From Scyliorhinus canicula (lineage: Eukaryota), in the NCBI RefSeq assembly GCF_902713615.1, contig NC_052160.1, forward strand, positions 137,620,737 through 137,684,736: a stretch of DNA of 64,000 bases, in the 5' to 3' direction. Under the pieces are notes generated by a model that was given only the letters and a program-made list of their open reading frames with translations, did not search any database and was not told the DNA's origin. This document shows positions 2,291-44,114 of this stretch, one piece after another. Every line of letters begins with the position of its first letter. Position 1 is the stretch's first letter. The position numbers and the translations under genes are program-made.

Positions 2291-2407
2291 AGAAGCTGAA
2301 CTGAACAGTCACCGTTTATGGACTCTATTCCGCTGGCTGCTCTTTGCTGCTCTGGCTGTTTGCACCGTTTCAGTCACATGTTGGACACGATTTGCAAAGA
2401 AATCCAG
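2291..2407 (+). CDS. Gene 1 transmembrane exon (activating-type, Arg in TM); upstream exons lie outside the window
   Basis: tttaactag|A GAA...TCC AG|gtatga, phase 2-2. Encodes EAELNSHRLWTLFRWLLFAALAVCTVSVTCWTRFAKKS. Paralog of 26004-26120. Confidence 0.75.
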
Positions 2408-2936: not shown

Positions 2937-5301
2937 TTAGACCATCCAACAAGAACATTACAACAACTACCTGATGATATGGGCTGAATTTTAACGATCA
3001 ACAGGGAGAGAAATGGAGGTAAAACCCTGGGAAGCAGAATCAGATCAGCTCCTCGACACAGTCCTCCCATCGGGGTAATTTACTGGCCGTGGGGGGGGGG
3101 GGGGGGGAGTGGGCAGGCTAATTGCCCCATGGAGACAGACAGACGATTTACAGATGTCAAGGCGCCTTTTTTTAAGTATTAATTTGTGGGATGTGGGCGT
3201 TGCTGGGTGGACCAGCAGCAAGGCCCATTTTACAGGGCTGTCTACATTTAGCCAACAACGTGGCAACTCCCTGTCACATGTGGTGGAGGCACCAGCTAAA
3301 TGGAGTCAACCTCTGAGCGACAGCCCAGCTGAGGGGAGGTTTTAAGCAGCAAATAGAGAGCCCTGGGGGCAGACAGGCCTTGGGGCCTCAACAAACCTGT
3401 AGAGATCAGGTCTCCCTTCTGCCTCTGGAGACAACACCACTCCCGGTGTTCCTGCTGAGTTACTGACCCTCTGGCTGAGTCGACAGTTCTGTGGGCAGAC
3501 GGCCATCCATAATAGGCGGCTACCCACAAAATTTAACTGGCAGACTCTCCGCCCACTCGTGGTGACGCACATTCCCTCCCAATGTCGGGGCTGCCGCGCT
3601 CATGGAGGTGAAACCTGCCTTATGTAACCGCTTGACCCAGTCACAACCCACGTGAGTGCAGCACAAGGTCAAGTGTGGAAAACTGATCAGCTTTTGGTCA
3701 TTTACCCAATATCTCCTTCTGTGGCTCAGTGTTGTTGTCGACACTTTACTACATTAAAGGAGATATAAAAGTGCAGGTTGCCATTGATGCTGTAGATATT
3801 GTGTCACCGACAGAATTACCATTTCCAGTTAGTGCCTGTGGTCCGTGTACTTTGTCTGAAAGTATGCTCTAGTTCCTGACCATCGATGTGTGTATCCCAC
3901 TTAAATGATTCTACCAGAAAGCTGCTGTGAATTGTAAAATAAAGAATGTAATTTATTCTCATCCATGCCATTCTCATTCCAAAATAGGTGCAAATAAATA
4001 TATCGGGTCAAACCTGTAGGGGAGCTGATGGGCCGCACACTGTTGTCCACTCTGGAATTGACCCTCGGTCATGACGATACCAGGTCACCCCCTCACCAAC
4101 AGCAGACAGGCATGAAGGTGACCCGACTCCCCCCCCCCCCCCCCCAACCCCCCCACCAGCTCCCTCATCAAAACCACCCATCAAATCCCCCAACAAACCC
4201 CCGATCAGAGGTTCCTGTCAGTCACTCGTGCCTGAAAGTTGAAGAGAAGTCCAGGAAGTAGAGCAAAAATCACTGCATTTTCACTTCCCCTTCCCTAACA
4301 CCTGCTGCCTCAGGCAATAATGTTTAACACAGCAGCTTTGCCAGAGGCTTCCTTGAAGACCAAGTACACTGAAAAGGCTTCAAATCCCTCGATAAGCTTT
4401 GAAATGCAAATCTTCCATTCAATTCCACGCAACAATACATTTCATTAGCCAGTGATGACAGTTTTAATACTCCAGAGACACTTGCTAGGTGGATTGTTTA
4501 TCTTTCTTTCCCTTCAGACTTGACTGCATCTCAAATAGCCTGTTGTGATGCTAACCACAATGTTTATAAACACTCTTGCCATGATTGACAGATTCTCATC
4601 ACATCAAAAGCAGCTACGTGCTTTCTGCTGTGGGGGCAAGCTCTTCCCCATGCATAAATTAGCATGGGTAAGGAGAGAGACTCACATTCCGGGCGCTGCT
4701 CCTAACGCCAGCAGAGACCAGTAGCGATTCTCCACTGGCAAGAGCATCTATGATCCATAGTGGAGAATGCTGACCTTCATCTTAAATCAATGCCTACGTT
4801 CAAAGGCAAATATGAAACAGGGGATGGGAGAAGCATCAACAGCGTTCCTGGATCAGGCACAGTGTGTTGCATTGTTCAACCTGGGACCCAGTGCCATGGG
4901 CACCAATTGCAAAATAGAAAGTTCCCCAAACCCCAGGTAAGTTGAACAATATCAGAGTTAGACGTTATGGCAGACCAATCTCACCATTTGGATCAGAATA
5001 TTGCCATCCACCATCTCCCCTGCGTATTATTGCCTGGTAGCCCTTCACGTGAAACACTTTTGAAAGAAGGACAATCAATTCATTTTCTACAGGTCAGTTG
5101 CTTAAATTAATTTCTTATTCAGTTCCCCAGGACAGCAAATGAAGGGTTAAACGTAAACATCAACCACAGAACACGAATGGATCAGAGCGGCACTCGAAGA
5201 CTGGCCAGAGGATCAGAGCCTAATGTCCAGAACATTTTCACTTGCTTTTAGAAGTTACGCTCCAATGTTATTTCATACTTGATTATAATTTGAAATTTCT
5301 C

Positions 5302-14588: not shown

Positions 14589-14705
14589 AGAAATTTGGCT
14601 GCAATTTGAAGGAGGAAATGACAAATACAAAGTAGAAAACCACCAGAGTGAAAGACAGCAGAGCTCTGAGCTGGGAGACATCACCCACCCAAAACACTCC
14701 AAACA

Positions 14706-14745
14706 ATGGAATTAATTGCTCTTCTAATTCTAATGCCGGTATCAA
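14706..14745 (+). CDS. Gene 2 exon 1, signal peptide
   Basis: ATG GAA TTA ATT GCT CTT CTA ATT CTA ATG CCG GTA TCA A|gtgagt = MELIALLILMPVS. The phase-1 end joins the phase-1 V exon (A+AT = Asn). Confidence 0.85.
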
Positions 14746-15584
14746 GTGAGTTCCTTTTTTTTTAAACGTTGATCTTTAATATTCTTAAAAAGCATTTTTT
14801 TGCAACCTGAGCTGATGCGACCCAGAAACACTGAACTGACTCAGGCACCGGTGGTTTTGTCGGTGTGAGCTGCGGATGGTGTTACAAGTTGTAGGTGTTG
14901 TTGGAAAAGCCACGAATCTGCTCCTCCAGCATCTTCAATCAGCCTTCGCTCCTTTCCGCGCTTCCCCCTCTGCATTCTCACTCCATCTGCCTCGTCGCAG
15001 CTCTGTCTTCCCTGAAACACCAGCTCTTCATCAATCACAGGAAACTAACTTTGTTCTCTTTTCAGTTTAACACAACAAGTTCTGTGGGGGGGGCACCTTG
15101 ACCTCAGTAAAAGCTCTCAAGCAGATTCACATGGTGTTCCCTCAGCAGGTTGCATAGATGAATAGGGAACCTAGAAGACATGTATGTGTGTCTTAAATGG
15201 CAAACTGTGGAATATTCTTCTTCAGTATAGAAGTAGATTTGGAGAACAAAGACTCACAATCGGCTGTTTTATTTCAGCCAAGATCACCAGCGTGAGAATA
15301 GACATTGAGTGGTTCTTTCTGTTTAAATGAATCTGCATTGCGACACATGTCTTTACCAGGGATTATTTCATCATATTTCTCAGCATCAGCTCGGAGCTGA
15401 CAATTCTCTTCCTGTACCTGTTCATGTCGTCCAACATCATTTCCCATCTGCTTTTTAGTGACAAAATTAGCACAGGCCACCTCCTTAGCCAATTCAGTCT
15501 TTGTGTGTTTACAAACTAACGGAGCCACAGAGAACCTGCCTTAACCCCCCTGTCCCCCTATTGCATGGTTATCTTGTTGAATCA

Positions 15585-15888
15585 GAACCGTAGAATTTCT
15601 GCAGTGCCGAAGGAAGCCATTCAGCCCATTGAGTCTGCACTGACCCTCTGAAAGAGCAGCCTACCAAGGCCCACAACCCCAACCCTATCCCCGTAACCCA
15701 TAACATCACCCAACTTGCACATCTTTGGACACTAGTCTGTGGGATGAAACCGGAGCACCCGGAGGAAAACCACACGGACACAGGCAGAAAGTTCAAACTC
15801 CACACAAAAAGTAGCCGAAGGCCAGGATTGAACCCGAGTCCCTGGCACTGTCAGGCAGCAGTGCTAACCACTGTGTCACCCTGCTGTC
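15585..15888 (-). mobile_element. HE1-like SINE (copy B ~38320-38620); further copies at ~13400-13570, 47560-47870, 48850-49160 (+), 50905-51250 and 52540-52860
   Basis: Shared core AAACCGGAGCACCCGGAGGAAACCCACGCAGACACGGGGAGAA and a tRNA-like head. Confidence 0.8.
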
Positions 15889-16164
15889 TCTCAGACATTG
15901 ATGCTTAGATTTAAAACCCTAGTTTCAGTTTGATCGACATCACTTTCAAACTTAGTGTGAAGTATTTTCATATTGTGGTCACTCTTTCCGAAATACTATT
16001 ATTAATTAGCCTATATTCATCGCACAATACTGGATCTAAATTAGCAAGTTCCTCAGTGCACTATTCTAGACATCCATCTCCCATACATTCCATGAATTCA
16101 TCTTCCACAACATTAATACTAATTAGGTTCACCTAACCTATTAGTACATTGATAAATAAATAAT

Positions 16165-16372
16165 CAATAACCTTTATTGACACAAGCAGGCTCACATTAA
16201 CACTGCAATGAAGTTACTGTGAAAAGCCCCTAGTTGCCACATTCCGGCGCCTGATCAGGAACACAGAGGGAGAATTCAGAATTCTCAGCTGATACGGGAA
16301 TTGAACCCACGCTGCTGGCCTTGTTCTGCATCACAAACCAGCTGTCAAGCCCACTGAGCTAAACCAGCCCCC
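16165..16372 (-). mobile_element. Second tRNA-derived SINE family (copy B ~38898-39105; also ~52250-52430 + and ~54275-54440 -)
   Basis: Shared GAAGTTACTGTGAAAAGCCCCTAGT core and GGGAATTGAACC B-box (minus). Confidence 0.75.
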
Positions 16373-17229
16373 AAAGCTTCCAAGAACATTGTATTATTTT
16401 TGTCAGACAGATCGCTAATTTCCTGATGTATATTGTGGTTTACTAAACCAATACTACTTGGTGGCCGATAGACTACGCCCACCAATGTTTTCTGCCTGTT
16501 GCTGTTTCTTAGTTCCACCCAAACTAATTCGATGGGTGCAATTTAATAGAAAAATAGAGTCCCGCTTTGGGCGCATTTACCACGGTGTTTCCGACGCTTG
16601 GTAGCACAGAGAATGATCCCGCTATTATATAGGACTCTTTTTCCGGCCTCGGAGAGGAACGCCCCACTTGGACTCATTTCCCGCTCAGCTTGCCAATGCA
16701 GGAAGAGATCTGGGCACCAATTTTAAATGGTGCCCAATTCTCAACCACCCATTGCAGCCTCCGAGTCCCACCCAGTGCCCCAATTTACCAATTAGGGGCT
16801 CCACGAGCCACCCCATAATCCATCTCATTAGGGCCGGGCAGCCCCTGTCCCAATCCCTTGCACAGGTAACCTGGCACATAGGTGCCTTGATACTGCCAGC
16901 CTGAGATCCTGGCAGTGCCCATGCCCACCTGTCAGTGTTACTTGGGCACCCTGGCAGGGCCAGAGTGGTAGTGACAGTGTGACACTGCCAGAATTCCAGC
17001 GTGGAAGTGCCAAGGTGCCGGCGTGGCATCAGGAGTGCCACCGTGCCCAGAGCCTGACACCCCCAGCCCTCCGATCGCCACGGCGATCCCCAAATGACAT
17101 TATGCCTGGCACACATTTGTGGAAACCAGCACCATGGCGGGGTCTCGGAGGTGGGGCCATTCGATTCTGAGCCTTGCGCAACTTCTCACTAACTACTCAC
17201 TTGAATATGGCAACGTTAGATCGCGTGAG

Positions 17230-17820
17230 ATATAACAAGCATCGCAAACCTCAAATCCCTGGCGAGATATCACAAACGCTGCATCCGCAAAATCCTGCAA
17301 ATCCACTGGCAGGATAGGCGTCCCAACCTGAGAGCCCTCTCCCAGGACAATATCCCCAATATCGAGGCACTGGTCGCGCTCGACCAGCTGCAATGGGTGG
17401 GCCACATTGCCCGTATGCCCGATTCCCAAGACAAGTGCTCTAATCTGAGCTCCCCAATGGCAAGACATCACCAGGAGGGCAGAGGAACCACTACAAGAAC
17501 ACTCTGAAAGTTTCCATAAATAAATGCAACACCCCAGGAACAGGTGGGAATTGGTTGCCTGAGAAGAAACAAACTGGGAAAAAACATCGGCGCGGAAGCC
17601 AATCACCTCGGGCGTCGCAGGGTGGAGCACGCACAGGCCAAGTGTAAACCGTGGAAAGAGATTGAGAATCCAGAATGACCCAACCATCCACCTCATCAAT
17701 CACCGCCTGCCAGATCTCTGGCAGCGTCTGCGGATCCACGATTGGACTATTCAGCCACCGCAGAACCCACCTCCCCAGAGTGGAACCAGTCATCCTCGAC
17801 CCTGAGGTACTGCCTTGAAG
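17230..17820 (+). mobile_element. RTE-clade LINE 3' fragment (copy B ~39962-40552)
   Basis: RCIRKILQIHWQDR...LDQLQWVGHIARMPD...GGQRNHYKNTLK is typical of the RTE ORF2 C-terminus. Confidence 0.8.
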
Positions 17821-19487: not shown

Positions 19488-19811
19488 ATTTGTGTCAATT
19501 AACTGGACCCGAGAAGGTTTCTGGGGAATTAGGAAGATCAATCACTGTGAACTGTCTGTATGATCGGAAATACGAGGACAATGTTAAACAATGGCGTAAA
19601 GGTCTTTATTACATAACAAGTTCTGTTGTGGTTTCCACTGAACATCCAGAAAAAGGAAAAGTAACTCTGACTGACAACAGAACACAAGGAATATTTTCAG
19701 TGACCATGGACAAGCTAATGAAGAGCGATGAAGGACGATACTGGTGTGTGATAGGAACAGGAGCATTTAAATATGATGAAAAGGTTCCTGTTGACATAGA
19801 ATTATCTGAAG
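19488..19811 (+). CDS. Gene 2 Ig V-set domain exon, CD300/pIgR/CMRF35-like
   Basis: ccaacag|AT...GAA G|gtaaga, 324 nt, phase 1-1. SITVNCxYDRKYEDNVKxW...FSVTMDKLxxSDxGRYWC has the B- and F-strand Cys, C-strand Trp and D-x-G-x-Y-x-C motif; the CxYxxxYxxxxKxW pattern is typical of CD300/pIgR V domains. Confidence 0.95.
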
Positions 19812-20441
19812 GTAAGATACTAACGGATTTCCTTTTAATTTATTCAGTCAAAATGCTAACATTTGAAATCAGAAATACCACCTGTCCCACCAGAGGACCA
19901 GCAGCTCAACAGACTTGACAATGTCACCAAACGGCGTGGCCACTGCTGAGGCTGCAGGAACGCTGCCTCTGCTGAGAGGATTGAATTGGCAGCGGATCTG
20001 TTCACAGACAGACATTTCTCACGTGTGGTTCAGCCGCAAAGTAATTGGGTGAATTTTAACAGTTAAATAGACGCACGTTTGGATGTGTGCAAAGGGTTAC
20101 ATCAAGTCACAGAAAGTTGGGATCCCGATAGCATCCAGTGCCCTTTCAGGATATCCGTGGGAAGGTTTGATGGGGGGCGGGGAACCCTCGTGCAGCTCGC
20201 TGTCAGATATGTCATTTGCATATTCAGATAAGCAATTAAGTTCTATTTAAATTAAGGATTCTGACCTTAACAGACAGCGGACTTCTTTTCCAAGCTGCTT
20301 GGAACTTACTCGTGTCACTGAGGCGACTGCACAACATTTCTTCAATAAAACTGACAGGCTGGGAAGCCTTTGACAGTGAAAATGACGAGCCTCAGTTTCC
20401 CAGACCTGGCCGATCACCCGGGTGGGTAACCTTGCCAATGG

Positions 20442-20597
20442 CCACCCAGCTGGCTGTCCCCACACCCCACCCTCTAACCCACCCAGCTGGCTGTCCCCAC
20501 ACCCCACCCTCTAACCCACCCAGCTGGCTGTCCCCACACCCCACCCTCTAACCCACCCAGCTGGCTGTCCCCACACCCCACCCTCTAACCCACCCAG
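20442..20597. repeat. Minisatellite, 37-bp unit x ~4.2
   Basis: CCACCCAGCTGGCTGTCCCCACACCCCACCCTCTAAC repeated four times without mismatch, plus a partial unit. Confidence 0.95.
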
Positions 20598-20678
20598 GTC
20601 TCTGCCTCTCCCTGAGGTTCTGTCCTCCCTTCTCCACAAGGAGAGGTCGGGAGTTGTGAGTGTTGGAAATGGCTTGTG

Positions 20679-20874
20679 CAGGGCAGCCTCACGGCGCCGA
20701 GGTCCCAGGTTCGATCCCGGCTCTGGGTCACTGTCCGTGTGGAGTTTGCACATTCTCCCCGTGTCTGCGTGGGTTTCGCCCCCACAACCCAAAGATGTGC
20801 AGAGTAGGATTGGCCACACTAAATTGCCCCTTAATTGGAAAAAATGAATTGGGTACTCTAAATAAAAAAAAGAA
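20679..20874 (+). mobile_element. HE1-like tRNA-derived SINE, 5'-truncated, recent
   Basis: B-box GGTTCGATCCC, A-rich tail, 13-bp TSD GAAATGGCTTGTG (20666-20678, 20875-20887). Confidence 0.88.
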
Positions 20875-21272
20875 GAAATGGCTTGTGTGAATAAGAGGGA
20901 AGGGTGTGAAGGGTGACTGCGTGCCATGGACTAACAAATGCATCCCAGTATTTTACCTTTAAAAAGGAACGATCAGCTGAATTAAGTGACTCAAATGGTA
21001 TGGGGTGGAAATTTCATATTTTAAAAATGTGGCGTAGTCAAGAGAATAATTGGGTCAAAATCCAGGAACACCCCTCCCTAACAGCACTGTGGGTTTACCT
21101 GCAACGCATGGACTGCAGCGGTTCAAGAAGGCAGCTCACCCTCCACCTTCTCAAGAACAGTTAGTGATGGATAATGAATGTTGGCTTCGCCCGCAACACC
21201 CACATCCCAGAAATGAATATTGAAATAGATCGCATTCATTAATAAAATGTTCAACGGCTTCCTCTATTATAG

Positions 21273-21360
21273 AACTGCAATGGACTTCAACAATGGGCCC
21301 TAACACCAGGATAGCATCGGATACTGTGACACCTTCTTCTTCCATAAGTCCCAATCACAT
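21273..21360 (+). CDS. Gene 2 Ser/Thr/Pro-rich stalk exon
   Basis: ctattatag|AA CTG...CAC AT|gtaagt, phase 1-2. Encodes ELQWTSTMGPNTRIASDTVTPSSSISPNH. Homologous to 44009-44114. Confidence 0.85.
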
Positions 21361-22305
21361 GTAAGTTGAAATCAATATATTTGTTTCTTTAGTAACCATA
21401 TATAAGGAATGGCAGCCTACAGAACATTAGCCAAGATGACCCTATAGAGCTGACAGCAAGATTGTACTTCAGTATTCTTTGGGCAGTCGCAGTTCAAAGT
21501 ACAGCCAACCCTATATCTACGGGTCAGGTGGCTTTTTTGGGCAAATCAGATTTCAAGGACTATTATTTTTAATTTGTTCATGGGACGTGGGTGTCGCTGG
21601 CTGTGCCTGCATTTATTGCCTAGCCCTAATTGCCCTTGAGGGGCAGTTAAGAGTCAACCACATTGATGTGGGTCTGGAGTCACACATAGGCCAGACCGGG
21701 TAAGGGAGGCAGATTTCCTTCCCAAAAGGACATTTGTGAATCAGATGGGTTTTTATGACAATCGACAAAAGTTTCATGGTCATTTTTAAGCTTTTAATTC
21801 CCAATTTTTATTGAATTCAAATTTCACTAACTGCAGTGGCAGGAATTGAACCAGGGACCCCGAGAGTTCTCTGGGTCACCAGTCCAGTGACAATCCCACT
21901 ATGCCACCGCCGTCCCAAGTCCCCTATTTAGCAGTTAGATAAGTAAATGAAAACTGCAGCATTATATCATGGCAATTGTTCTGGTCAAGCCTGAGTATCG
22001 AAATGTATTTTATCACGTCAGACATTACAAAATCACAGAAACTTTGCAGTGCGAAAGGAGTCCATTTGGCCCATCGTGTCTCCACCAGCTCTCTGAAAAA
22101 AGCATGCTGCCAAGTCCTCTGCCTTATCCCAGTAACATTGCAGATTTTTTTCTTTTCAAATAGCAATCCAATTCCCTTTCGAATACTTAGATCGAATCTA
22201 CCTCCACCGCCATCAGAGGAAGTTCATTCCAGCCTCTGGATGAAACATTTCCTCACACCACTTTTACTCCTTTTGCCAAGAGATTCTCACTTGAGTGGAA
22301 ACAGT

Positions 22306-22954
22306 GGGCGGGATTCTCTGATCCTGAGGCTAAGTGTTGACGCAGTCGTAAACGGTGTCGCGTTCCTCGATGCCGTCAACATGCCCTCAGGAGCAGCGAT
22401 TATGACCCCTACAGGGGGCAAGCACGGCACTGGAATGACCCATACCGCTCCAGCTGTCGATACAGGTGTCAGATGGGCATCGCGGGTCTGCGCATGCGCA
22501 GTGCGAAAGGTGCCAATGCGCGCAAGCGTGGTGGGTCCCTTCTCCGCGCCGGCTCGATGCAACATGGCGTAGGGTGACAAGGCCGGCAGGGAATGAAAGA
22601 GGCCCCCAGCCTGAGAGGCCGGCCCACCGATTGGTAGGCCCTGATCGCGGAGTCCCCTCCCCCCAGGGTCGGACCCCCCTTCCCTCCCCCACCAGGCTAC
22701 CCACAGATGGATGGATGCCGAGGCCCCACCGGGTAAGGCCACATGTGGACGGTGCTGGAGCTGCTCGGATTTGTTGTCCAGCCGCTCGGCCCATCCCGGG
22801 CGGGAATCGCCGGGGGGGGGGGCGCGTAGTGCGGCCCTGACCGGCGCCCCGATTCCCCACTCTCCGGAGAGTCGGCAGACCGCCGTCGCGGCAGCGTCGC
22901 GCAATTCACGCCCAGCCAGACGATTCTCCAGCCTGGGCTGAGAGAATCCCGCCC
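22306..22954. mobile_element. PIF/Harbinger-type MITE (its copy-A counterpart ends at 101)
   Basis: 14-bp TIR GGGCGGGATTCTCT, 3-bp TSD AGT, inserted in a CR1 3' fragment. Confidence 0.88.
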
Positions 22955-24392
22955 AGTATCTCATTAATTCCCCTGCCCATACCCCTCAGGGTCATGAACA
23001 CCTCTATCAAGTCTCTTCTCAGCCTTATTTTCTCCAAGGAAAACAGTCCGAACTTCTCCAATCCATCCTCATAGCTACAGATCTTAATCCCTGGAATCAT
23101 TCTTGTGTATCCCCTCTGTACTGCCTCCCATGCCTTCAAAACGTCCTCATGTATGACGGCGAGAACGGGACACAATCTCAAGATGAGACCTAACCACCCA
23201 GAAGGTGAAAAATAGTAAAATCTCAGAAATAATAATACTGATCCACTTTGTTTTTCTCCATGCGTAGCGTCTTATACAAGTTCAACATGACGTCCTTACT
23301 CTTGTACACAATGCCCCGATAGGATCGCTTATTCTATCTTCTGATAAGATCAAAAGTCCGGTTGATTGGAGGTGTCCAAAATACAACTTTTATTTGCTAA
23401 TTATTCACCTTAATACACTTGCAAAAAAACTAAATCAAAATCGTTGATCAAAAAATACAGAAACTTGTCAGAACATAGCGAAAAGCGTAAAACATAAAGC
23501 AGAAGAAAAGTTCAAATAAAATTACTTCAAAACAAATTAAGTCGATAGATGGTTCAAAAATTCATGAAAGCATAAATTTGGACCAACCCCTTAACCACGA
23601 GGTCTTTCTCTTAAGGAAATTTCTATCGATGGTCTAATCCCTCATTCACTCTCATTGGTTTCAAATACTCAGCTGAGACCTCCTGGTTTATTCAAATAGA
23701 TGTTTGTCACTTAGAAGATGATTTATTAATCAAACATTGGTCATTACTTGAGATTTACTAATGTCCATCAAAATTAATTCAGTGTCTACATGCGCACCAC
23801 TGTACGAGGATAAGATGCTCCCGTCATGGCGAGCTATTAACCTTGCTGTTGCTAATTATCTGATACATTTTCATTACTAAATGCACTAGAATACAATGGT
23901 CTATACATTATACAAAATATTTTATGAAACAATGTCTGAATTTATGCAGGCATGGCACCAAAGTTCAAGAGTGTATTCATTATCTGAAACAGTGACTATC
24001 ATTCTGCAGTTAGGGTGTCTTGAATAATTTTCTTCTCAAGCTATACACTCAATCAATCCTTAAAGGCAGCAAATAAATAAATCAATCAATAATTTGTCAG
24101 TCTGTATTAATAAAGCCTAAGATCCTATTAGCTTTATTAACCTCTCCACATGCCCTGCCAGCTTCATATGCATCTCCAGTGATATCCATCTGGGCACCTC
24201 CTTTAGAGCTTCTCCCTTTGTTTCTGCTGTCTCTCTATTTTCTTCCTGCCAAAATGAATCACCTCACACTTCTCTATATTGAACTTCACCTGCCACTTGT
24301 ATGTCTAATCCGCCAACATATCTGTCCCTTTAAAGTTCAGGACTATCCTCATCAAAGTTGACAAAGGTTCCACTCCACATATTACATTGCTT

Positions 24393-25237
24393 TTTTTAAA
24401 TAATAATTTTTCTTGAGCTTTTTGAAAAATGTTTAACAACAGAACAATAATAATAATAACAATAACAATAATAAACACCCCCCGGCACCCATAACAATGC
24501 ATATGACTAACTCCCCCACGCTCCCAAACCCAATAAACAACAAAATAAATTAACAATAAATTAAATAAACAATGCCCCCCTGAAACACCCCCCTTTTTTT
24601 CCCCCTCCCCCCCCCCCAGGTTGCTGCTGCCACTGACCTAGTTCCCTATCTTTGAGCCAGAAAGTCGAGGAAAGGCTGCCACCGCCTAAAGAACCCTTGT
24701 ACAGACCCCCTCTGGGCGAATTTGACCTTCTCCAGCTTAATGAATCCCGCCATGTCATTGATCCAGGTTTCCACGCTTGGGGGTCTCGCATCTTTCCATT
24801 ACAACAAGATCCTCCGCCGGGCTACTAGGACGCAAAGGCCAAAACACCGGCCTCTTTCGCCTGCTGCACTCCCGGCTCCACCAACTCCTTTGGGACAGGC
24901 TGGTCTGAGTACTCCAGCAACTCCACTTTCAGCTCCGTAAAGTAGTGCAGAAGGGCCGCCTGCTGCTCCTCCGCGCACTGCCTCCACTCCTCGGGGGCTC
25001 CACCGGCCGCCATTTTGTCCACCTTCCCCCGCTTTTCCAGGGGAGCTGCTGCCGCTTATTTCCTCGTCCCACTCCGGGTCAGCACCATAAATCCCGGGGG
25101 TATTGCCCCAGACCCCTTTACACACCGGGAATCGTTGAATCAGCGCCGTTTGGGGTCCTTAAAAGAGCCCACAAGGCCTATAAAAGCGGGAGCTGCCGAA
25201 CGTGCGGCTTAGCTCCGCATTGCCGGCACCGGACGTC
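24393..25237 (-). mobile_element. Internally deleted L1 derivative (5'UTR + ORF1 start fused to ORF2 end + 3'UTR/polyA), copy B only
   Basis: TSD CCACATATTACATTGCTT at 24375-24392 and 25238-25255; empty site at ~1525-1542 in copy A. The 5' end resembles that of the 57911 element. Encodes KMAAGGAPEEW...ELLE then EPGVQQAKEAGVLAFASLVARRRILL. Confidence 0.92.
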
Positions 25238-26003
25238 CCACATATTACATTGCTTAACCACACTCAAGAAACGTGGCACCATCCAGGACAAGGCAGCCCA
25301 CTTTATTGGCACCCATCCATAAACATTCAGCACTGGCGCAAAGAAGCGCCATGTGTACCATCTACAAGATGTAATGCAGGCACTCACCAAGGTTCATTAG
25401 ACAGCACCTTCCAAACCCACGACCACTACCATCTACAAGGACAAGAGCAGCAGATACCTGGGAACCCCACCACCTGGAGGTTCCCCTCCAAGTGCCTCAC
25501 CACCCTGACTTGGGAAGATATCGCCGTTCCTTCACTGTTGTTGAGTCAAAATCCTGGAACTCCCTTCCTAACAGCACAGTGGGTGTACTTACACCACAGC
25601 AGTTCAAGCAGGCTGCTCACCTCCATCTTCTCAAGAGAAATCAGGGATGGGCAATCAATTCTGATCTACCCAGTAATGTCCACGTCTCGTGAAGGAATAA
25701 CTATAAAATTAATTAGTAATACAGTTTACTTTCATGCTGTGTATTTTATTACTGGTGTTTGGACTGGCACCTTGTGGTCTGCTGAAGTGTGTGGCTGTGT
25801 TTACTGTATACAAGTCCTATTTTACCTGTGTTTATGGGCGGCCCAAGCCCTCCTAGATATGTGCGCAGGCTGGAAAATGGACAAATCTCAGTGCATTCAC
25901 TATTACGTGACACAATTCCTCGGGACGCTAAAAGGCTAAAAATACTCATCATGGGGTGTAAGCACTTTTATAATGTACTAATGATAGCTTCCTGTTTAAC
26001 TAG

Positions 26004-26120
26004 AGAAGCTGAACTGAACAGTCACCGTTTATGGACTCTATTCCGCTGGCTGCTCTTTGCTGCTCTGGCTGTTTGCACCGTTTCAGTCACATGTTGGACA
26101 CGATTTGCAAAACAATCCAG
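26004..26120 (+). CDS. Gene 2 transmembrane exon with TM Arg (activating-type)
   Basis: tttaactag|A...TCC AG|gtatga. The phase-2 acceptor fits the stalk exon (AT+A = Ile). Encodes ...LWTLFRWLLFAALAVCTVSVTCWTRFAKQS. Confidence 0.8.
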
Positions 26121-29100
26121 GTATGATCATTAAAATCTCATGATTCTAATATTCAAGGTGATTTCGTTCAGTTGAAAAGCTCAAGCACTTTGAAAGTTGC
26201 CTCAAAATAATAGGTCAAAGATCCAAAATAAAATCCCCACTGCTCATAAACTCCAAGTGAGTGAAGCATTGTCACCATTCCGATGTTATAACGATGGCTT
26301 TTACCGTAAGCTTTATGCCTGTCGACTGCAGTTAGTCTGGAGTTTTTGTTCTCAAATGGAAATCCATGAGAGAGGACAAATCGGAGCAGGCAGATGATAC
26401 AAAACATTCACATACATTGATCACTGACTGATTACAGAACATAACTGCAGTGATATCACGGTAGTGTTGCAATTCACTGACGGACCATTAAGAGTCTCAC
26501 TCGTATATAGGTGAATTCAGCTGACCAGACATTGGCTGGAGGAAGGAAAAGAGGGAGCTTGCATGTAGCATGATTTTGATGTTGTTCATCTGCTGTCTTG
26601 TATAGTTTATCCGTTTCTAACCTTAACTACAAGTGTTCTTGTAATAAATTAGACCATCCAACAAGAACATTACAACAACTACCTGATGATATGGGCTGAA
26701 TTTTAACGATCAACAGGGAGAGAAATGGAGGTAAAACCCTGGGGAGCAGAATCAGATCAGCTCCTCGACACAGTCCTCCCATCGGGGTAATTTACTGGCC
26801 GTGGGGGGGGGGGAGTGGGCAGGCTAATTACCCCATGGAGACAGACAGACAATTTACAGATGTCAAGGCGCCTTTTTAAAAAAATTAATTTGTGGGATGT
26901 GGGCGTTGCTGGGTGGACCAGCAGCAAGGCCCATTTTACAGGGCTGTCTACATTTAGCCAACAACGTGGCAACTCCCTGTCACATGTGGTGGAGCCACCA
27001 GCTAAATGGAGTCAACCTCTGAGCGACAGCCCAGCTGAGGGGAGGTTTTAAGCAGCAAAGAGAGGGCCCTGGGGGCAGACAGGCCTTGGGGCCTCAACAA
27101 ACCTGTAGAGATCAGGTCTCCCTCCTGCCTCTGGAGCCAACACCACTCCCGGTGTTCCTGCTGAGTTACTGACCCTCTGGCTGAGTCGACAGTTCTGTGG
27201 GCAGACGGCCATCCATAATAGGCAGCTCCCCGCAAAATTTAACTGGCAGACTCTCCGCCCACTCGTGGTGACGCACATTCCCTCCCAATGTCGGGGCTGC
27301 CGCGCTCATGGAGGTGAAACCTGCCTTATGTAACCGCTTGACCCAGTCACAACCCACGTGAGTGCAGCACAAGGTCAAGTGTGGAAAACTGATCAGCTTT
27401 TGGTCATTTACCCGATATCTCCTTCTGTGACTCAGTGTTGTTGTTGACACTTTACTGCATTTAACGGAGCTATAAAAGTGCAGGTTGCCATTGATGCTGT
27501 AGATATTTTGTCACTGACAGAATTACCATTTCCAGTTAGTGCCTGTGATCCATGTATTTTGTCTGGAAGTATGCTCTAGTTCCTGACCATCGATGTGTGT
27601 ATCCCACTTAAATGATTCTACCAGAAAGCTGCTGTGAATTGTAAAATAAAGAATGTAATTTATTCTCATCCATGCCATTCTCATTCCAAAATAGGTGTCA
27701 ATAAATATATTGGGTCAAACCTGTAGGGGAGCTGATGGGCCGCACACTGTTTTCCCCTCTGGAATTGACCCTCGGTCATGACGATACCAGGTCACCCCCT
27801 CACCAACAGCAGACAGGCATGAAGGTGACCCGACTCCCCCCCCCCCCCCCCCCCCAACCCCCCCACTAGCTCCCTCATCAAAACCACCCATCAAATCCCC
27901 CAACAAACCCCCGATCAGAGATTCCCGTCAGTCACTCGTGCCTGAAAGTTGAAGAGAAGTCCAGGCAGTAGAGCGAAAATCACTGCATTTTCACTTCCCC
28001 TTCCCTAACACCTGCTGCCTCAGGCAATAATGTTTAACACAGCAGCTTTGCCAGAGGCTTCCTTGAAGACCAAGTACACTGAAAAGGCTTCAAATCCCTC
28101 GATAAGCTTTGAAATGCAAATCTTCCATTCAATTCCACGCAACAATACATTTCATTAGCCAGTGATGACAGTTTTAATACTCCAGACACACTTGCTAGGT
28201 GGATTGTTTATCTTTCTTTCCCTTCAGACTTGACTGCATCTCAAATAGCCTGTTGTGATGCTAACCACAATGTTTATAAACACTCTTGCCATGATTGACA
28301 GATTCTCACCACATCAAAAGCAGCTACGTGCTTTCTGCTGTGGGGGCAAACTCTTCCCCATGCATAAATTAGCATGGGTAGGGAGAGAAACTCGCATTCC
28401 GGGCGCTGCTCCTAACACCAGCAGAGACCAGTAGCGATTCTCCACTGGCAAGAGCATCTATGATCCATAGTGGAGAATGCTGACCTTCATCTTAAATCAA
28501 TGCCTACGTTCAAAGGCAAATATGAAACAGGGGATGGGAGAAGCATCAACAGCGTTCCTGGATCAGGCACAGTGTGTTGCATTGTTCAACCTGGGACCCA
28601 ATGCCATGGGCACCAATTGCAAAATAGAAAGTTCCCCAAACCCCAGGTAAGTTGAACAATATCAGAGTTAGACGTTATGGCAGACCAATCTCACCATTTG
28701 GATCAGAATATTGCCATCCACCATCTCCCCTGCGTATTATTGCCTGGTAGCCCTTCACGTGAAACACTTTTGAAAGAAGGACAATCAGTTCATTTTCTAC
28801 AGGTCAGTTGCTTAAATTCATTTCTTATTCAGTTCCCCAGGGCAGCAAATGAAGGGTTAAACGGAAACATCAACCACAGAACACGAATGGATCAGAGCGG
28901 CATTCGAAGACTGGCCAGAGGATCAGAGCCTAATGTCCAGAACATTTTCACTTGCTTTTAGAAGTTACGCTCCAATGTTATTTTATACTTGATTATAATT
29001 TGAAATTTCTCTGTGTTAGAAAACGCGCCCTGCTGGTGGAACATCATCTGATCTATAGTGATGTCAGCAGAGTGTTTGTGTGGTCTTCAGTTCTCCATCT

Positions 29101-32100
29101 TAGATTGGATGAGTAACATCTCCTAATAAACCTCGCATCTTGTTTGTCAGAAATCCATGCCTGCGGCACCTCCAAACCTTTTCTCTTTGCAGAAAATTGA
29201 GAACATAATAAAAGCAAAAACTGGCGACGAGGATTGAGGCAAGAAACAAAACCTGCCGAGGGACTGAAATCGCCGGCGCAAAAAGAGGAGGCGGCGACGA
29301 GAGCGGTGGAGGAGATTCTGCGGACTGGACGTTGAAGTCGATCGTAAGAAAGGGCACTGATGCAGGAGGTTTAAATAAGAATAAAACAAAGATATCCGTG
29401 ATATGTTGTTCCTTGTCACTGAATAAAGCTCGTAGTCTTAAAGTTGAGATAGATGCTTTATTGTGAGTTTGTTCTCTCTCCAGCGCTTAAACTATGTTAT
29501 ATCTGAGCTGCCTGTCTGTGTTCTGCTCCCAGCTGCAGTTCCTGTGAAGTGACCCCTAACTTCCTGTCTGTCTCTATTTACACCTCTCCCGTGCTCCCTC
29601 TAGTGCTTGCTCAGTTGTATTGCATCTACATTGCCCCCTCGTATATTTACACAGATATACAGATCACTACACGGGAGTTGGCAGAACAAAAGTTTCGAAA
29701 TGTTTTCTTGCCGCCGGATGCCAGTGGATTCTAGGTCAGTGTTTCTCGGCCATATTGGTGAGCTGCGGGAAGGATGCAAGTGTGGCTCGGCCGCCGACGC
29801 TTCTGCGAACTCACCCTTGCATCATGCCTCCCGACACGGCCGATCTTTTCTCTCCGTGACTGCTCGGCTCCCTCTGTAGCTGCCACTTGAATGCTGCATT
29901 CGAAATCCGTTCTCTTCCCAACAGCTGCCGGGCACGCGTCCACCCAGTTAGCAGAGCACCAATCGCTCGGGCCAAGACAAGGGAGGCCCTTTTCAGCTCA
30001 TACAATGCACCGGTTGTGAGGTCTTTGCTGGGCGCTGTGGAGAAGGCCAACAAAATTATTTTTCTTTCAATATAAATTTAGAGTATCCAATTCATTTTTT
30101 CCCAATTAGCGTGACCAATCCACCTACCCTGCACATCTTTTGGGTTGTGGGGGCGAACCCCACGCAAACACGGGGAGAATGTGCAAACTCCACACGGACA
30201 GTGACCCAGAGCCGGGATCGAACCTGGGACCTCGGCGCCGTGAGGCAGCAGGGCTAACCCACCGCGCCACCCAGGGCTAATCCACTGTGCTGCCTAGGAG
30301 AAGGTCAAAAACAAGGCCTTGCCAAATGTTTGGTCACTGGCTGCCATTAACGTGATGTCGGGCAAGGCAGCCAAATCCTCAATGTAAAATGTACCCAGAG
30401 AGAAGCTGCAGCTGCTCCTGTATTCCCTGGGAGTCTCTGTCTGTTATGTTTACTCTGGGACTTTACAGGAAGCGATGTAACTACTCGGAGCCCAAGACAC
30501 AGAGCAGGCAGTGAATTGATTTGAAAGGAATACTTTTGTGTCTATGAAATGGCCCATTCTTTGAACATATACAAAATGTCACCCCCCCCCCCCCAAGGAT
30601 TAATGATTTATTGAGACAGAATGCATAGCTTAATTAAAGTACACTCAACGATATATAATAGAAAAATGTTGAGGAAATATATACACCTGTATTTATCTCA
30701 CGGCGACCGGCGATTCTCCGGCCCGGATGGGCCGAGCGGCCTACCGAGCCCAACCGGTTCACGACGGCGCCTACCAAATCTGGTCGCTGCCGGCGTGAAC
30801 AGCGCGCGACCGGTGAGTGTGGGGCCTGTGGGGGACGGAGGGAGGATCGAGCACCACGGGCGTGCTCAGCAGATGTCTGGCCCGCGATCGGTGCCCACCG
30901 ATCGTCGGGCTGGCGTCTCTAAAAGACGCACTCTTTTCCCTCCGCCGACCCGCAAGATCAAGCCGCCATGGAAAACTGTGAGACAGGGGTACATCGCCCC
31001 AGGAATGATGAACCTGACCAAATGGTATTTTTTAATGTTAAAACAAACTTTAATTTAAACACAGAATGAATCACATTGACATCAAATAAATAGCTTTACA
31101 ATTAACAGTTAAACAGTTCTAAATGAAAGGAAAAACCTTAACTCGCTCAGTACACCTGCTTCTGTACATATTCCAACTAAGCAACCCAATGCAGGTCAAA
31201 ATCCACTCAGAAATAAAGTTAGCAATCAGGGTTACTTGTTGTTGTCTGGACTTGTTGCCAGACCTTGGAAGAGAGACCCTTTCAGGAACAACCTGAATCT
31301 GTCTTGTCAGATTCAAATCCTATAGCAAAACCATAGACACACAGGCCCCTCTTATTAATTATATCCCACTAAGATGTCCCATGACCTGCTTAGCTGGGAC
31401 TAAACAAAATCCCTCAAATTATCTACACTCCAGGGGACCTCCAGCAATTAAAATAATGTTCAATCCACCATCTCCCTGTAAACAAGTAAATGGTTAAAAT
31501 CAAAGAATTCTTCAAATTTACTATACCTTAATTACCGCTTTGGTAGACACACTGCCTGTCAATGTTGTAAACCAGGGTTTTTAATATCATTATTGCCACA
31601 AATTTAAAATAATACGTTGATCAAACTATTATCATTTTCACTGGAATTATTGTTACACTGAATATAAGGGCTTTGAATTAAAGTGAAGCTCAGTCCGAAT
31701 GCGGATTTAAACTGATCTCCCAGAATGAATGGTCGTACAATGGGGGAACACTTTGCTGCAGATTGCTGAATTGTGGCACAGTTTATGCCCCCTCCCCTAG
31801 TATGTGACTGGCCACAGTCGGTTCGCTACTACAATGTGGGGTGTTTATAAGCAATCAATTTGGCTGAAAAAAAAAGTGTTTGTGCTGTGGAATTATATTT
31901 CTCATTGAAGTGTGCCCTTTTACTGGACAGGTTGGGAAGCACTGGTCTGGGCTGCAGGAACCACACGCCTGGCGGAATGAAACGGGCTGTGGGATTAGGG
32001 ATTCAAAAGTCTTTCCGATTCTGTGCATGTCACTACCCCAATAAGGCAAACCAGAGTCCAGGCAAAAGAGACATTTTTATGTTGCATTGTGGATCAGGAG

Positions 32101-32122
32101 ACCTCTTGTTTCACACATGATA

Positions 32123-33280
32123 AAAAACGGAAGGGAGGAAAGTTGATCGAAGTATATTCCCGAGGCGCCGGTATCTGGAATTGCGGGAAATGGTGGCACC
32201 GTGGATACATTTGATGATGACGGTGAGTGTTGGAACTTGCATCGAGAGAACTTTCCATTTGTCCTCCTAGCAACTCAAACATCTGTGGACCTCAAAGATT
32301 GCAATATTTCTCAGTTCGGTGAGGTGTAAAACTTTTATGCTGTTGTAAACCTTGGTCCACCCAGCAAAGCTGGGAGATAATACCTACAACAAATGGATGA
32401 AAATTCTAGAAGGGCATTTCTGACCGTGACCACTTACAATTACAGGAAGGTTTCGTTTCCAGTCAGGAAGAAGGTTACAATTCTTGGTGACCTTAAGAAA
32501 GTGAGCAAAATGCAAAGAGTTTGGTACTACAATTGACGACACCCTTTGGGACAGGCTGGTATGAGTCCTCCACAACAAAGCTGTTCAGAGGAAGCTGCTT
32601 ACTGTAAGAGATTTAACTCAAATCAGCTGGAGAAATTGCCACATCAATGAAGCTCGCAGCAAAAGCCAATTCACAGATAGGAGCTGGAGTGAAGATGCAC
32701 AAAATGGAGGCGGCCAAAAACAAGTCTGCAAGGGTTCGACCGTGTCATCGACGAGCAGAAAGTTGGACACTCAATGGGGAAATGCTGGAGAACAGAAAAT
32801 AAGTGCATAAGTGCTGTGGTAAAAAGGGTCATGTTGCCAAAGTGTGCTGGGCACGGCAAACCTCACCAACACTTAAGATGTGTAAGAGAAAAAATATATC
32901 TCAACCTACTCGTCGAGTTTACATGTTAATAAACTAAGTTTGAGACCCCTCAGGGGATGATTTGTCAGGACAGGGTGATTAACAATGTCTTTGGGTACTC
33001 CCAAAACTAGATGGTAACCAAATCAAACTGGAAACATATATGGGTGCAGCTGTATCATTGATACCAGAGACTATTTATAATCAGAAGTTCGAGCACCTGC
33101 CATTAATACCATTAAATGTTAACCTATACACACAGAGGTCAGACCACTAAAAGGCTATATTACAGTAAAATGGAAGTAAATGAAACAGCGGTGTCGCCTC
33201 TCCTCGTTGTCCGTGGAAGCTTTCCTTTTTTATCTGGTAGCGCACGGTTGGGAAACATTGGGCTGGATTCTCCGATTGAG
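32123..33280 (+). mobile_element. Degenerate Ty3/Gypsy gag-protease fragment, copy B
   Basis: Duplicate of 8430-9590. Confidence 0.8.
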
Positions 33281-36200
33281 AGAATAACCGCCGACTCTGT
33301 GGCTGGAAGGTGGATGTTCCAGGGTCCCGATGGCGGCATCGGTCCCAAAGCAATTCAGGACGGCACTCGCGGCACGTGGAACCAGTGTGATTCCATCTGC
33401 CGCCGGCGCTGGATTTGCTGCAGTCAGGATTGGTACCGGAGAGGCTGACAAGCTGGAGCTGCGGATAAGAGCTCCACTCCCCACACACACTCATTCCAGC
33501 CAAGAAAATGGCTCCCCAGAGAGCGGCCCCGGGATTCACAGATGCAGAGTTGGAGGTATTGCCAGATGCTGTGGAGGAGACGCAGGAACCCTGTTCCCCG
33601 GAGTTGGATGGAGGTTACTACCCGCCGTGTTAACTGGGCCTGGCCGCAGGTGGCAGGAGAGCCGTGGGCCCCACCGCGAGGGCCGGTCAGCAGTGCCGGG
33701 CAAAGCTGCACAAACTCCTCAGGGTGGCCCAGGTGAGTCACCGCCTCCTGCCCCTGGCGCCACTCCTGCCCACCCACCCCACACCCATCCCCACAACCAC
33801 CCCCCACCCCCATCATGCCAACACCCATCCGACTCACCATGGGGTGTGCCCCGCACACACAGGTCACCATCTGCAGACCCCGTGCACTGCCCATGTCCGA
33901 GTGTCTTACACTGCGCATAATCTGTCCCCCAGGATAAGGTGGCCCATAACCGCAGGGAGAGAGAATAGACTGGGGAGGGGGGGCTTCCAGACATGCGGCC
34001 CCTCACCATCGTGGGGCAGAGGGTGTCGGACCTGTTTGGCGGGGTGAGGAAGAGGGTAGTCGCAGAAGCGGAAGTCGGCATGAGATACCCCCATTTCGTT
34101 GCGATGTGCTTATGGCACATGAGGCACCCCTCACTGACCCCCCCCCCCCCCCCCCCCACACCGCGCCTCTCCGCAATTTCACCGTACGTTTTGCACTGTG
34201 TCCTGCAGGGTCACCACCAGACCAGGCGGAATCGGCCTGTGTCCCCGCCCCCAACTACAACCCCACGACTCACCAGGCCATGAGACGGGACACCGCTCCC
34301 CCACCCGCCCCCCCCTCCGCCGCAATCCCACATCACTCCGTGGCACATGTCCAGGGACGGCACCGACATCTGGTCACACCTGTCACCGGCACCCTCCACC
34401 ACCCAGAGACACTCACCTCAGTTGGAAGAGGCTCCTGGGACACTATCTGTTGAGCAGCAGGCACATGCAGCGATGCATCAGGTGGAGGTGGGAACACGCG
34501 AGGGGACGGGCGGTCGGAGGACACCCGACCCCAGGGACCAGCTGCCGTCCAGAAGGGTCGGGTACTTCTGCACGTGGTGGTCCCATCAATGCTGGAGATG
34601 CAGACTCCGAGCCGGGGACTACGGGAGGGGGTGCCAGCAAACATCCAGCACCTGCAGGTGCAGTTGGAGGAGTACAGCCCCCTGCAGGAGGCGTTGCAGA
34701 CCATGTTTGCTACCCAGGCCAACACCGCATGGGTGGCATCCATGTGGAGGACATGGGTGCAAAGGTATAAAACATGGGTCAGGATATCCAAGGCATGGGG
34801 CATCTTGTGCGGGCAGTGGCTGAGGCACAGGTCAGGGTGGCCATGTGTCAGGGCCACATGGACATTGCTGCGGCCATCCAGAGCATGGCCCTACACAACA
34901 GGCTCTGGCTGCGGGAGTCAAAAGCATTGGCCTGTTCCTGGATGATCAGAGCCAACCATAAAGGAACCTGGCACAGTCCCTGAGTGAGATGGCCCAGTCC
35001 CAGGGGGACGTGGCGTAGTCCCTGTGCTCCATGGACGCGAGTATTGAGACCCTGGTCGGTATGAGTGCAGACCTCCAGGACTGGCAGTGCCAGGTGATGG
35101 CAGAGCTGCCGGAGCTCCCTCTCGCCACACCCCCATCCCAAAGAGCAGCGCAGGGGCCATCAGGCACCCTGAGGGTGGAGGAGGTGATAGGGCACTGGGA
35201 GTGCCAGTGTGCCAGGGAGAATGTAGCAATTGCCACGGTGCATACATCTGCTATTCCTGTTCAGACTGTGCTCTGCCCCTCCCCCCGCGTCCCTCCCTGC
35301 AGATGAGCAGTTCTTTGGAAGGGTGTACTGAGTGATGCCGTCACCTGGAGGGTCACTGGCTGAGCTGGGCCACGCACGCCCTGTACATGGGTTGCCGAGA
35401 ATCTGGGGGTTCCTAGTGGGATGGCTTGAAGTGGGGCAGGGCCCCCATATAGCCGTTGGTGCTCTGCACATTGACGGTCATGGTGGGCAGTCAGTGAATT
35501 GCCCAGCCAGATGGCCACAGCAATGGTGGTGCGTGCCCGGACAACCCGGACTTGGGATGACATTCCCGGACCTCGGGCCATCTCCTGGTCACACACCCCG
35601 CTACTCCCCCTGCCCTCAGCCAGCGGCACTGCTATCAGCCCAGGGTTGGGCCTCTAGAAACATGTCTTACCTCCTCTCTCACCCTCAGCAGCACAGCAGG
35701 GTGCCAGTTTGGAAGGCTGCCTTAATCAATTCCATCCCCCTTTAAGGTCCCGCCCCCCGTTTTCAATCCCCCCTCAACCCTCCAACCTTGGGGTGCCCCC
35801 GGGAACGCTCTCAACCCCCCCCCCCCCCCCCCCCCCCCACCTCCCCATCCGTAAAGAACAGGAGGGGAAAATCCCAGCCAATGCCTTTCATGATTTCCAT
35901 TGACAGGATTGAAATAATGAGAAGCACAGCAACATAACACTGGCGAACAAAACATTCAAACCAAATAGGTTTTAGCTCCCATATCCAGACAGAAAACGAG
36001 CCTGACTATACAGCTTTCCTCAAGTCTGTTCCAATAAACTGGTGCTGACGTATACTTCATGGAAGCCGCTTTTTTACAGGTGGACTTCAGTCAGTGCAGA
36101 TACAGATTACCGCTTTGTGTTTTTAATTTTCATGCCATGTATAATTAACAGCTGGCCAGCGTTTGGACTGTGTGAGGAAGCCGGAGACCCACAGAGAAAC

Positions 36201-37306
36201 CCACGCAGCCACGGGGGCGAATGTGCAAACTCCACACAGACGGTCACCCAAGGCCGGAAGTGAACTCGGGGCCCCTGGCGCTGTGAGGAAGCACTGCTAA
36301 CCACAGATAAGAGGAGGGAAGACATTTGCCACGTTTTGCGAGGGCCCCAAAGAATCCAGCACAAGTTGAAGGATGGAAAGAAATAACATTTATTTACAAT
36401 AACGTATATACGCAGCAGCAGCAGCAGCAATTTCCCTAGCTGCTCACTCTCCTCTAGCCGGTTCCAAACTGGCCAGCTTTATTTATGCAGGGAGTCTGCT
36501 GACGATTTCTCCGCCTCCCCCCCCCCGCCGCCTCATTGGGGAAGCTCATACTCCCAAAGGATTGTTGGATTGCCATTAGTCCCCAGCCAGTGGTAAGCAG
36601 GCAGGTTATAACACCATGAGACTGCATAACCGGTCATGTACTCACAGAATATGCTGTTTAAACGTGCGGATCGAGACAGTGCAGAATGGCCTTTGTTAAT
36701 TTGGAGACACGCATTTGGACATCAGTGCAGACTGTGTTCCAGAAAACGTTTAGGCTCCAACACGGCAGGCATAAAAATATATTGTAGTTACCGAAATGAT
36801 GCAGCAGGAACCAAGTAAACTCATTAACCTCTCTAATTAGCTCAATCCTGGCCGACAAAAATCCCCCTCATGGTCAGAAAGTGGGGAAAACGGTTTCCGC
36901 AGCCGGCGAGGAATTTTATTCTGAGAGGTAAGTTGATGATGGAACGCGATTTGGGGAGAATGTTGATTGGAAAGTTATTTTCTTGCTCGTGAAAGTAACC
37001 TCCCTCAGCTGCCACATTTATGTTGTCACGGTGATTGATTAGAATAGAGTCTATTCAACAGACTGTTTCCCTTTTCGAAACGTGTGAGGAAGCACTTGGA
37101 ACTGTTAATGTGTAAGAAGAGGTTAAAGAGTAGTCTACCTGAATACAGAGTATTAGAATTTACCATTAAGGTGCCTAAACTGAAACAGACCCCTCCCCAT
37201 TTATTTAGTCTCCGGAATGTAAGTGTCCCACGACCCAGGCCTTTAGTCAGGTTGGGGAACATGGATACAGGCTCTGCAGTTGGTGCCCGACCTCTTTCAC
37301 ATTCTG

Positions 37307-37318
37307 AAAGAGGAACTG
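37307..37318 (+). promoter_or_regulatory. Candidate PU.1/SPI ETS site upstream of gene 3
   Basis: Same AAAGAGGAACTG motif in copy B. Confidence 0.45.
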
Positions 37319-37435
37319 AGAAATTTGGCTGCAATTTGAAGGAGGAAATGACAAATACAAAGTAGAAAACCGCCAGAGTGGAAGACAGCAGAGCTCTGAG
37401 CTGGGAGACATCACCCACCCAAAACACTCCGAACA

Positions 37436-37475
37436 ATGGAATTAATTGCTCTTCTAATTCTAATGCCGGTATCAA
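37436..37475 (+). CDS. Gene 3 exon 1, signal peptide
   Basis: Identical to 14706-14745 (MELIALLILMPVS + A|gtgagt). Confidence 0.87.
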
Positions 37476-40400: not shown

Positions 40401-40633
40401 ATCCAGAATGACCCAACCATCCACCTCATCAATCACCGCCTGCCAGATCTCTGGCAGCGCCTGCGGATCCACGATTGGCCTATTCAGCCACCGCAGAACC
40501 CACCTCCCCAGAGTGGAACCAGTCATCCTCGACCCTGAGGTACTGCCTTGAAGATGAAGTCCCTTGGTGCCAATGTCAGTCTGTCCATCCACACTATGCC
40601 CTTTAATCTTGTCTAAACAATCTGCAAGAATAT

Positions 40634-42305: not shown

Positions 42306-42629
42306 ATTTGTGTCAATTAACTGGACCCAAGAAGGTTTCTGGGGAATTAGGAAGATCAATCACTGTGAACTGTCAGTATGATCGGAAATACGAGGACAAT
42401 GTTAAACTATGGTGTAAAGGTTCTTATTACATAGGAAGTTCTGTTGTGGTTTCCACTGAACATCCAGAAAAAGGAAAAGTAACTCTGACTGACAACAAAA
42501 CACAAGGAATATTTTCAGTGACCATGGATAAGCTAATAAAGAGCGATGGAGGACGATACTGGTGTGTGATAGAAACAAGACTATTTAAATATAATAAAAT
42601 GGTTTCTGTTGACATAGAATTATCTGAAG
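42306..42629 (+). CDS. Gene 3 Ig V-set domain exon, CD300/pIgR/CMRF35-like
   Basis: aacag|AT...GAA G|gtaaga. Encodes LCQLTGPKKVSGELGRSITVNCQYDRKYEDNVKLWCKG...SDGGRYWC, retaining the family W-C-K-G motif. Confidence 0.95.
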
Positions 42630-44008: not shown

Positions 44009-44114
44009 GCCAACCACAGAGGTCAACAATGAGCCCATCTACTGTCACAACAGAAAGTAACAAGACTCCTGTTACCACAGCTCTCACCACTTCTACCACT
44101 GCTAACTTTCACAA
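44009..44114 (+). CDS. Gene 3 mucin-like stalk exon
   Basis: tcttatag|GC CAA...CAC AA|gtgagt, phase 1-2. Encodes GQPQRSTMSPSTVTTESNKTPVTTALTTSTTANFH, with an N-K-T sequon. Confidence 0.88.

Follow-up and report, generated by a model that had tools for sequence, protein, structure and literature searches.

Receptor pairs with one activating and one inhibitory member are familiar from mammals, as is positive selection on their ligand-binding domains, and in the KIR and Ly49 families activating receptors have been born recurrently from inhibitory ones. Few clean, datable examples are available from outside mammals. A study of CEACAM paired receptors describes an activating member produced by recombination, followed by quick evolution of the ligand domain (PMC5112662). 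Mammalian CD300 molecules (CMRF35-like/CLM/LMIR/MAIR) form pairs such as CD300A/CD300C and mouse CD300lf/CD300ld, which have single V-set ectodomains and are encoded by adjacent genes, one member being inhibitory and ITIM-bearing and the other activating, with a charged TM and a short tail. In mouse CD300lf the CDR3 and CC' loops form a ligand/virus cleft, the floor of which comprises a Cys36-Cys44 disulfide with Tyr34, Gln41, Arg42, Trp89 and Met100, and this cleft is the binding site for both lipid head groups and norovirus capsid (PMC6166816). The ectodomains of primate CD300A and CD300C are kept alike by gene conversion (PMC12447643). Among cartilaginous fish, the clearnose skate has a multigene family, the modular domain immune-type receptors (MDIR), whose activating and inhibitory members bear V domains that are CD300/TREM/pIgR-like (PMC3031540).

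The locus described here was found in the catshark Scyliorhinus canicula, in a 64,000-nt stretch of chromosome C15 (137620737-137684736, hereafter the window) of the 4.2-Gb genome, and was examined together with the 20 kb upstream. It resembles the mammalian CD300 pairs in that adjacent genes encode an inhibitory ITIM-bearing receptor and an activating-type receptor with a charged TM and short tail, each with a single V-set ectodomain, and the differences between the two catshark receptors cluster in elements that appear homologous to the CC' and CDR3 cleft of CD300lf (PMC6166816). In contrast to primate CD300A and CD300C, however, the catshark pair differs most in the V exon, and probable conversion is confined to the leader and intron 1. 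The family-typical Cys36-Cys44 disulfide has been lost, fully in one catshark receptor and half in the other. The likeness to MDIR is drawn from their published description, and MDIR can carry several domains whereas the catshark genes encode one. As in the KIR, Ly49, CEACAM and Siglec-5/14 pairs, an inhibitory-type ectodomain has been joined to a charged-TM module, but in the catshark the founding event is legible base by base and belongs to a shark lineage. The differences between the two V exons are best explained, with a probability of roughly 0.65, by positive selection acting on the probable ligand-binding cleft of this newly formed activating/inhibitory CD300-type pair.

A hybrid activating-type gene beside its inhibitory parent

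An exhaustive HMMER search together with a full-protein search recovered three NCBI proteins from the contig, and all three gene models, rebuilt from the DNA with canonical splice sites, match these proteins exactly (Table 1). Gene 0 (199 aa, P0152) begins upstream of the window and carries the V0 exon; gene 1 (198 aa, P0022; XP_038675621.1, named 'CMRF35-like molecule 3' by NCBI) carries V1, and gene 2 (261 aa, P0153; 'CMRF35-like molecule 1') carries V2. The V1 and V2 exons encode 107-residue domains, both of which score above the Pfam V-set (PF07686) curated cutoff and are CD300/CMRF35-like (pIgR-type) V-sets by sequence and fold similarity. The further organization of genes 1 and 2 is that of the family, with one V domain, a stalk and a TM, followed by an ITIM tail in gene 2 and, in gene 1, a charged TM with a short tail. 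Genes 0 and 1 have in common the stalk, the Arg-containing TM and a short tail (about 16 aa in gene 1) without tyrosine motifs.

Table 1. Features of the locus, with positions numbered from the first nucleotide of the window
Feature	Position	Strand	Remarks and basis
Duplication unit A	2864 nt before window (intron 2 of gene 0) to 19959		Self-comparison
Duplication unit B	19957..42777		Self-comparison
Duplication junction	19954..19962		Intron 2, 148 nt past V1; microhomology only 2-4 nt
Low-divergence tract	14702..17726 vs 37432-40460		Leader exon and first 3 kb of intron 1; ~0.5% vs ~2% elsewhere, P=1e-12
Gene 0 leader, V0 and stalk exons	Before window		Exact protein match
Gene 0 TM exon (Arg)	2291..2407	+	Exact protein match
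Gene 0 last coding exon	5123..5150	+	Exact protein match
Gene 1 leader exon	14706..14745	+	Exact protein match
Gene 1 V1 exon	19488..19811	+	CD300-type V-set; Pfam V-set E=4.7e-12; exact protein match
Gene 1 stalk exon	21273..21360	+	Copy of gene 0 stalk exon
Gene 1 TM exon	26004..26120	+	Arg within membrane span (LFRWLLF)
Gene 1 last coding exon	28833..28860	+	Short tail without tyrosine motif
Gene 2 leader exon	37436..37475	+	Exact protein match
Gene 2 V2 exon	42306..42629	+	V-set; Pfam V-set E=2.3e-11; exact protein match
Gene 2 stalk exon	44009..44114	+	
Gene 2 TM exon	48040..48146	+	Uncharged span
Gene 2 cytoplasmic exon	50285..50337	+	
Gene 2 last coding exon	55147..55302	+	Two ITIM-type motifs, VAYATV and VEYSTL

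Genes 1 and 2 have the layout of paired receptors: they are adjacent, 22.8 kb apart, with near-identical ectodomains (V1 and V2 share 85% protein and 94% DNA identity) and opposite signalling modules. Both V reading frames are intact, and 31-mers specific to V1 and to V2 each occur in small sequencing runs, probably of RNA, that come from several studies. The arginine in its TM suggests that gene 1 may signal through an ITAM adaptor, and the very low divergence of the two genes over the leader and the initial 3 kb of intron 1 points to possible co-expression with gene 2. The gene 2 intron between the stalk and TM exons also contains reverse-transcriptase-like open frames on the minus strand (44800-46130), a LINE fragment.

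Self-comparison of the window and the upstream 20 kb revealed a tandem duplication of 22.8 kb, in which each V exon lies 148 nt from the end of its own unit. Both breakpoints fall in an intron 2, one 866 nt past the V0 exon of gene 0 and the other 148 nt past the V exon of the ancestral inhibitory gene, and the inhibitory leader and V exon were therefore fused to an activating stalk, TM and tail. The promoter, leader and V exon of the inhibitory gene were thereby copied to a place in front of the duplicated stalk, Arg-TM and short-tail exons of activating gene 0; gene 1 is the hybrid born of the duplication and gene 2 is the intact inhibitory parent. In Scyliorhinus torazame the gene immediately after the V0 orthologue is an inhibitory one, an order that fits the state before the duplication, although a duplicate might have been lost by collapse in that short-read assembly. 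The S. torazame gene model scyTo_0008610 seems to take a different frame through the TM exon and to extend into sequence upstream of the next gene.

V0 itself, just upstream of unit A, is an older paralogue with 59% protein and 73% DNA identity to V1/V2, and a genome-wide search for copies of the V exon found only these three. The two units differ unevenly along their length. Divergence is low in a tract whose start lies no more than 5 nt from the leader exon (Table 1) and that is probably the product of later gene conversion, which has kept the leader and early intron 1 of both genes alike. Unit-specific indels of 863, 604 and 370 nt are present at 1524/24375, 11831 and 12589. Perfect 37-nt tandem repeats occupy 20442-20597, in intron 2 of gene 1 just past the junction, and their counterpart past V0 (2260-2379 nt before the window) has fewer repeats.

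Replacement and silent change in the V exons

An earlier note on this DNA had claimed a strong excess of amino-acid change between V1 and V2, and the counts on which it relied were reproduced. The exons differ at 20 of 324 nt, which in the phase-1 frame replaces 16 amino acids and leaves a single synonymous codon difference (GAC/GAT). There are 6 differences in the 248 positions of the upstream intron flank (19240-19487) and none in the 40 nt of the leader exons. The C/CC' and FG peptides that it quoted are correct, and there is a shift in charge from V1 to V2, from net 0 to +2 in the FG segment (residues 89-100) and from -1 to +3 over the whole domain. At the nucleotide level there are 19 nonsynonymous changes and one synonymous change; three differences are adjacent nucleotide pairs (double substitutions) and CpG accounts for only 2 of the 20 changes. 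The downstream flank (19812-19959) is somewhat elevated in divergence, differing at 7 of 148 positions (4.7%).

The non-exon DNA copied in the same event provides a background, with differences at 340 of 18579 aligned positions (1.83%), which may underestimate the age of the duplication in view of the conversion tract at 0.5%. At 6.2% the V exon is well above this value (P=3e-6) and is the most diverged 324-nt segment of the 18.9-kb duplicated alignment. Nonsynonymous sites (19/251, 7.6%) have changed at about four times the neutral rate (Fisher p=4e-7), whereas synonymous sites (1/70) are at the background level. Because gene conversion has visibly been active in the duplication, nonsynonymous change was also compared with local silent sites, namely the synonymous sites of the exon and the introns within 100-500 nt. 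These differ at 1.9-3.0%, again significantly less than nonsynonymous sites (p=0.001-0.008).

The dN/dS ratio was 5.5 by the NG86 method and omega was 7.2 by pairwise maximum likelihood under a GY94 model that allowed for strong transition bias, with omega=1 rejected in this single pairwise comparison (2dlnL=6.3, p=0.012). The claim of diversifying selection on the exon is thus upheld by the likelihood estimate and by the comparisons of dN with neutral and with local silent divergence, but not by a Fisher test of nonsynonymous against synonymous change within the exon alone (p=0.089).

The other exons copied by the duplication, all 3' exons, differ at 6 of 233 nt (four nonsynonymous and two synonymous changes), which is nothing unusual. 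In five other recent V-exon pairs of the same cluster pN was not above the divergence of the flanks, as measured by local BLAST, and pooling nonsynonymous and synonymous changes with the focal pair excluded gave no excess (p=0.28). Since neither the other pairs nor the other duplicated exons show it, the signal is specific to V1/V2, and an excess of dN across the family as a whole was ruled out by the comparison of the five pairs with their flanks.

The putative cleft and the cause of the excess

The AF2 model of V1 has a pLDDT of 94.5. The closest solved structures identified by Foldseek are those of mouse CD300lf (TM 0.90), and phmmer against PDB sequences matched pIgR and CLM-1. The register between catshark and mouse domains was fixed by motif landmarks and not by coordinates: the family KYWC motif at positions 33-36, the cysteines that the S. 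torazame orthologue has at both 36 and 44, and the phmmer coordinates, which put the F-strand YWC at an offset of 4 residues. In this register catshark sites 34, 36, 39, 43 and 89-96 would line a cleft homologous to that of CD300lf.

Seven of the 16 changes fall among the 12 residues of the FG hairpin (89-100; permutation P=0.011) and four belong to the C strand and CC' loop (34, 36, 39 and 43). The evidence that changes cluster on ligand-contact surfaces is mixed: the FG cluster is significant, enrichment of the 16 changes across all canonical loops is not (P=0.33), and placement at ligand contacts is suggested by homology to CD300lf. The changed sites also vary more throughout the family (entropy 2.46 vs 1.69 bits, p=0.003), which low constraint would produce likewise. 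The exception is Cys36, which is kept in 35 of 38 relatives. V1 carries Arg36 and Ser44, and V2 carries Ser44 with an orphan Cys36, so the family-typical C-C' disulfide is missing from both. It is present in V0, in the S. torazame orthologue and in 35 of 38 aligned relatives, and its loss is derived within the family. Both domains keep Cys22-Cys86, Trp35 and the D-x-G-x-Y-x-C motif.

When the changes were polarised with the protein residues of the S. torazame positional orthologue (P0156), five were assigned to V1 and six to V2, and the remaining five sites changed in both lineages or are ambiguous. Both partners have therefore changed, and about equally. If the S. torazame residue represents the ancestor, the double substitutions at codons 39 and 92 can each be read as one step per lineage.

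What, then, could have produced so many replacements against so few silent changes? The main rival to positive selection is that an older divergence was kept at the V exon while concerted evolution homogenised the rest of the unit, so that omega would be near 1. Later conversion is evident from the 3-kb tract, comparison of V0 with V1 or V2 gives an omega of about 1.1, as in older paralogues of the family, and the divergence of the downstream flank is raised. This account nonetheless seems improbable, although it is the most serious of the competitors, as the synonymous sites of the exon and the adjacent introns are at background and significantly below the nonsynonymous sites, likelihood rejects omega=1, and the escaped tract would have to match the exon borders. 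Somewhat less probable again, and next among the rivals, is patchy gene conversion from a divergent V exon, be it an allele, a haplotype or a paralogue, that is absent from the assembly. The cluster is large and conversion-prone and the three adjacent double substitutions might be taken as traces of a donor. Against this, the genome contains only V1, V2 and V0, the last at 73% identity, and V0-like states are interspersed with V0-specific sites and form no V0 tract, which rules out V0 as the donor. The doubles at codons 39 and 92 have the stepwise reading given above, and of 20 changes imported from a donor about 4 should have been synonymous, where one was observed.

Relaxed constraint on one copy, as a decaying duplicate, might be proposed from the youth of the hybrid gene and the lack in V1 of the family-typical Cys36. 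Neutral change would yield about 4.6 nonsynonymous differences, however, where 19 are seen, and these are distributed symmetrically between the copies; both frames, Cys22-Cys86, Trp35 and D-x-G-x-Y-x-C are intact and both genes are modelled by NCBI. A rate above neutral and its symmetry rule out pseudogene decay, and relaxed constraint as such is very unlikely. Equally hard to credit is an assembly artefact or a mutational hotspot targeted to the exon, given that V1- and V2-specific words each occur in runs from several independent studies, and that a hotspot would lift synonymous changes to the same degree and CpG contributes so little.

Under positive selection, events at the locus may be reconstructed as follows. 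The tandem duplication between the two intron 2s, with only microhomology at its junction, created hybrid gene 1 beside gene 2. Amino-acid changes would then have accumulated in both V exons at roughly four times the neutral pace, with silent sites remaining neutral. These replacements are concentrated in two elements, the C strand with the CC' loop and the CDR3-like FG hairpin, most likely through selection that altered the ligand specificity or affinity of each partner. In paired receptors the inhibitory member is expected to be exploited and the activating member to counter this, and an arms race is made more plausible because V1 and V2 belong to such a pair. The pathogen-decoy idea of the earlier note is compatible with the paired architecture. 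The changes would indicate that selection already acted on the CD300-type cleft in cartilaginous fish. The founding rearrangement is intact, and 18.6 kb of co-duplicated DNA supplies a neutral clock. Because only 16 residues separate the two ectodomains, the effect of individual changes on ligand binding could be traced with few point mutants.

The surrounding cluster and other elasmobranchs

Genes 0-2 form part of a cluster at C15:137.20-137.83 Mb, in which at least 21 CD300-type V exons occupy about 620 kb (loci L004-L021). The other recent pairs in this cluster are L005/L006, L007/L008, L010/L013, L018/L019 and L020/L021. Their exon synonymous divergence (1.4-2.8%) is lower than that of their flanks (3.7-14%), and this suggests exon-centred homogenisation elsewhere in the cluster.

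In the horn shark Heterodontus francisci an inhibitory (P0059) and an activating receptor (P0154) have V domains that are 95% identical. This pair represents an independent event, because its divergence point lies after the stalk. The activating copy has Cys36-to-Arg and Cys44-to-Ser replacements as well as changes at 77 and in the FG loop, and an inhibitory homologue from the sawfish (Pristis, P0119) likewise has Arg36 and Ser44. A broader interpretation, offered tentatively and with some doubt, is that the catshark locus gives a snapshot of an activating receptor born from an inhibitory one and followed by fast, two-sided adaptive remodelling of the cleft, with Cys36-to-Arg convergent with that of the horn shark. 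If this were true, paired-receptor arms races with such mechanics would already have been running in the oldest jawed vertebrates. An inhibitory/activating-type pair with near-identical V domains is also present in Mustelus (P0047/P0157).
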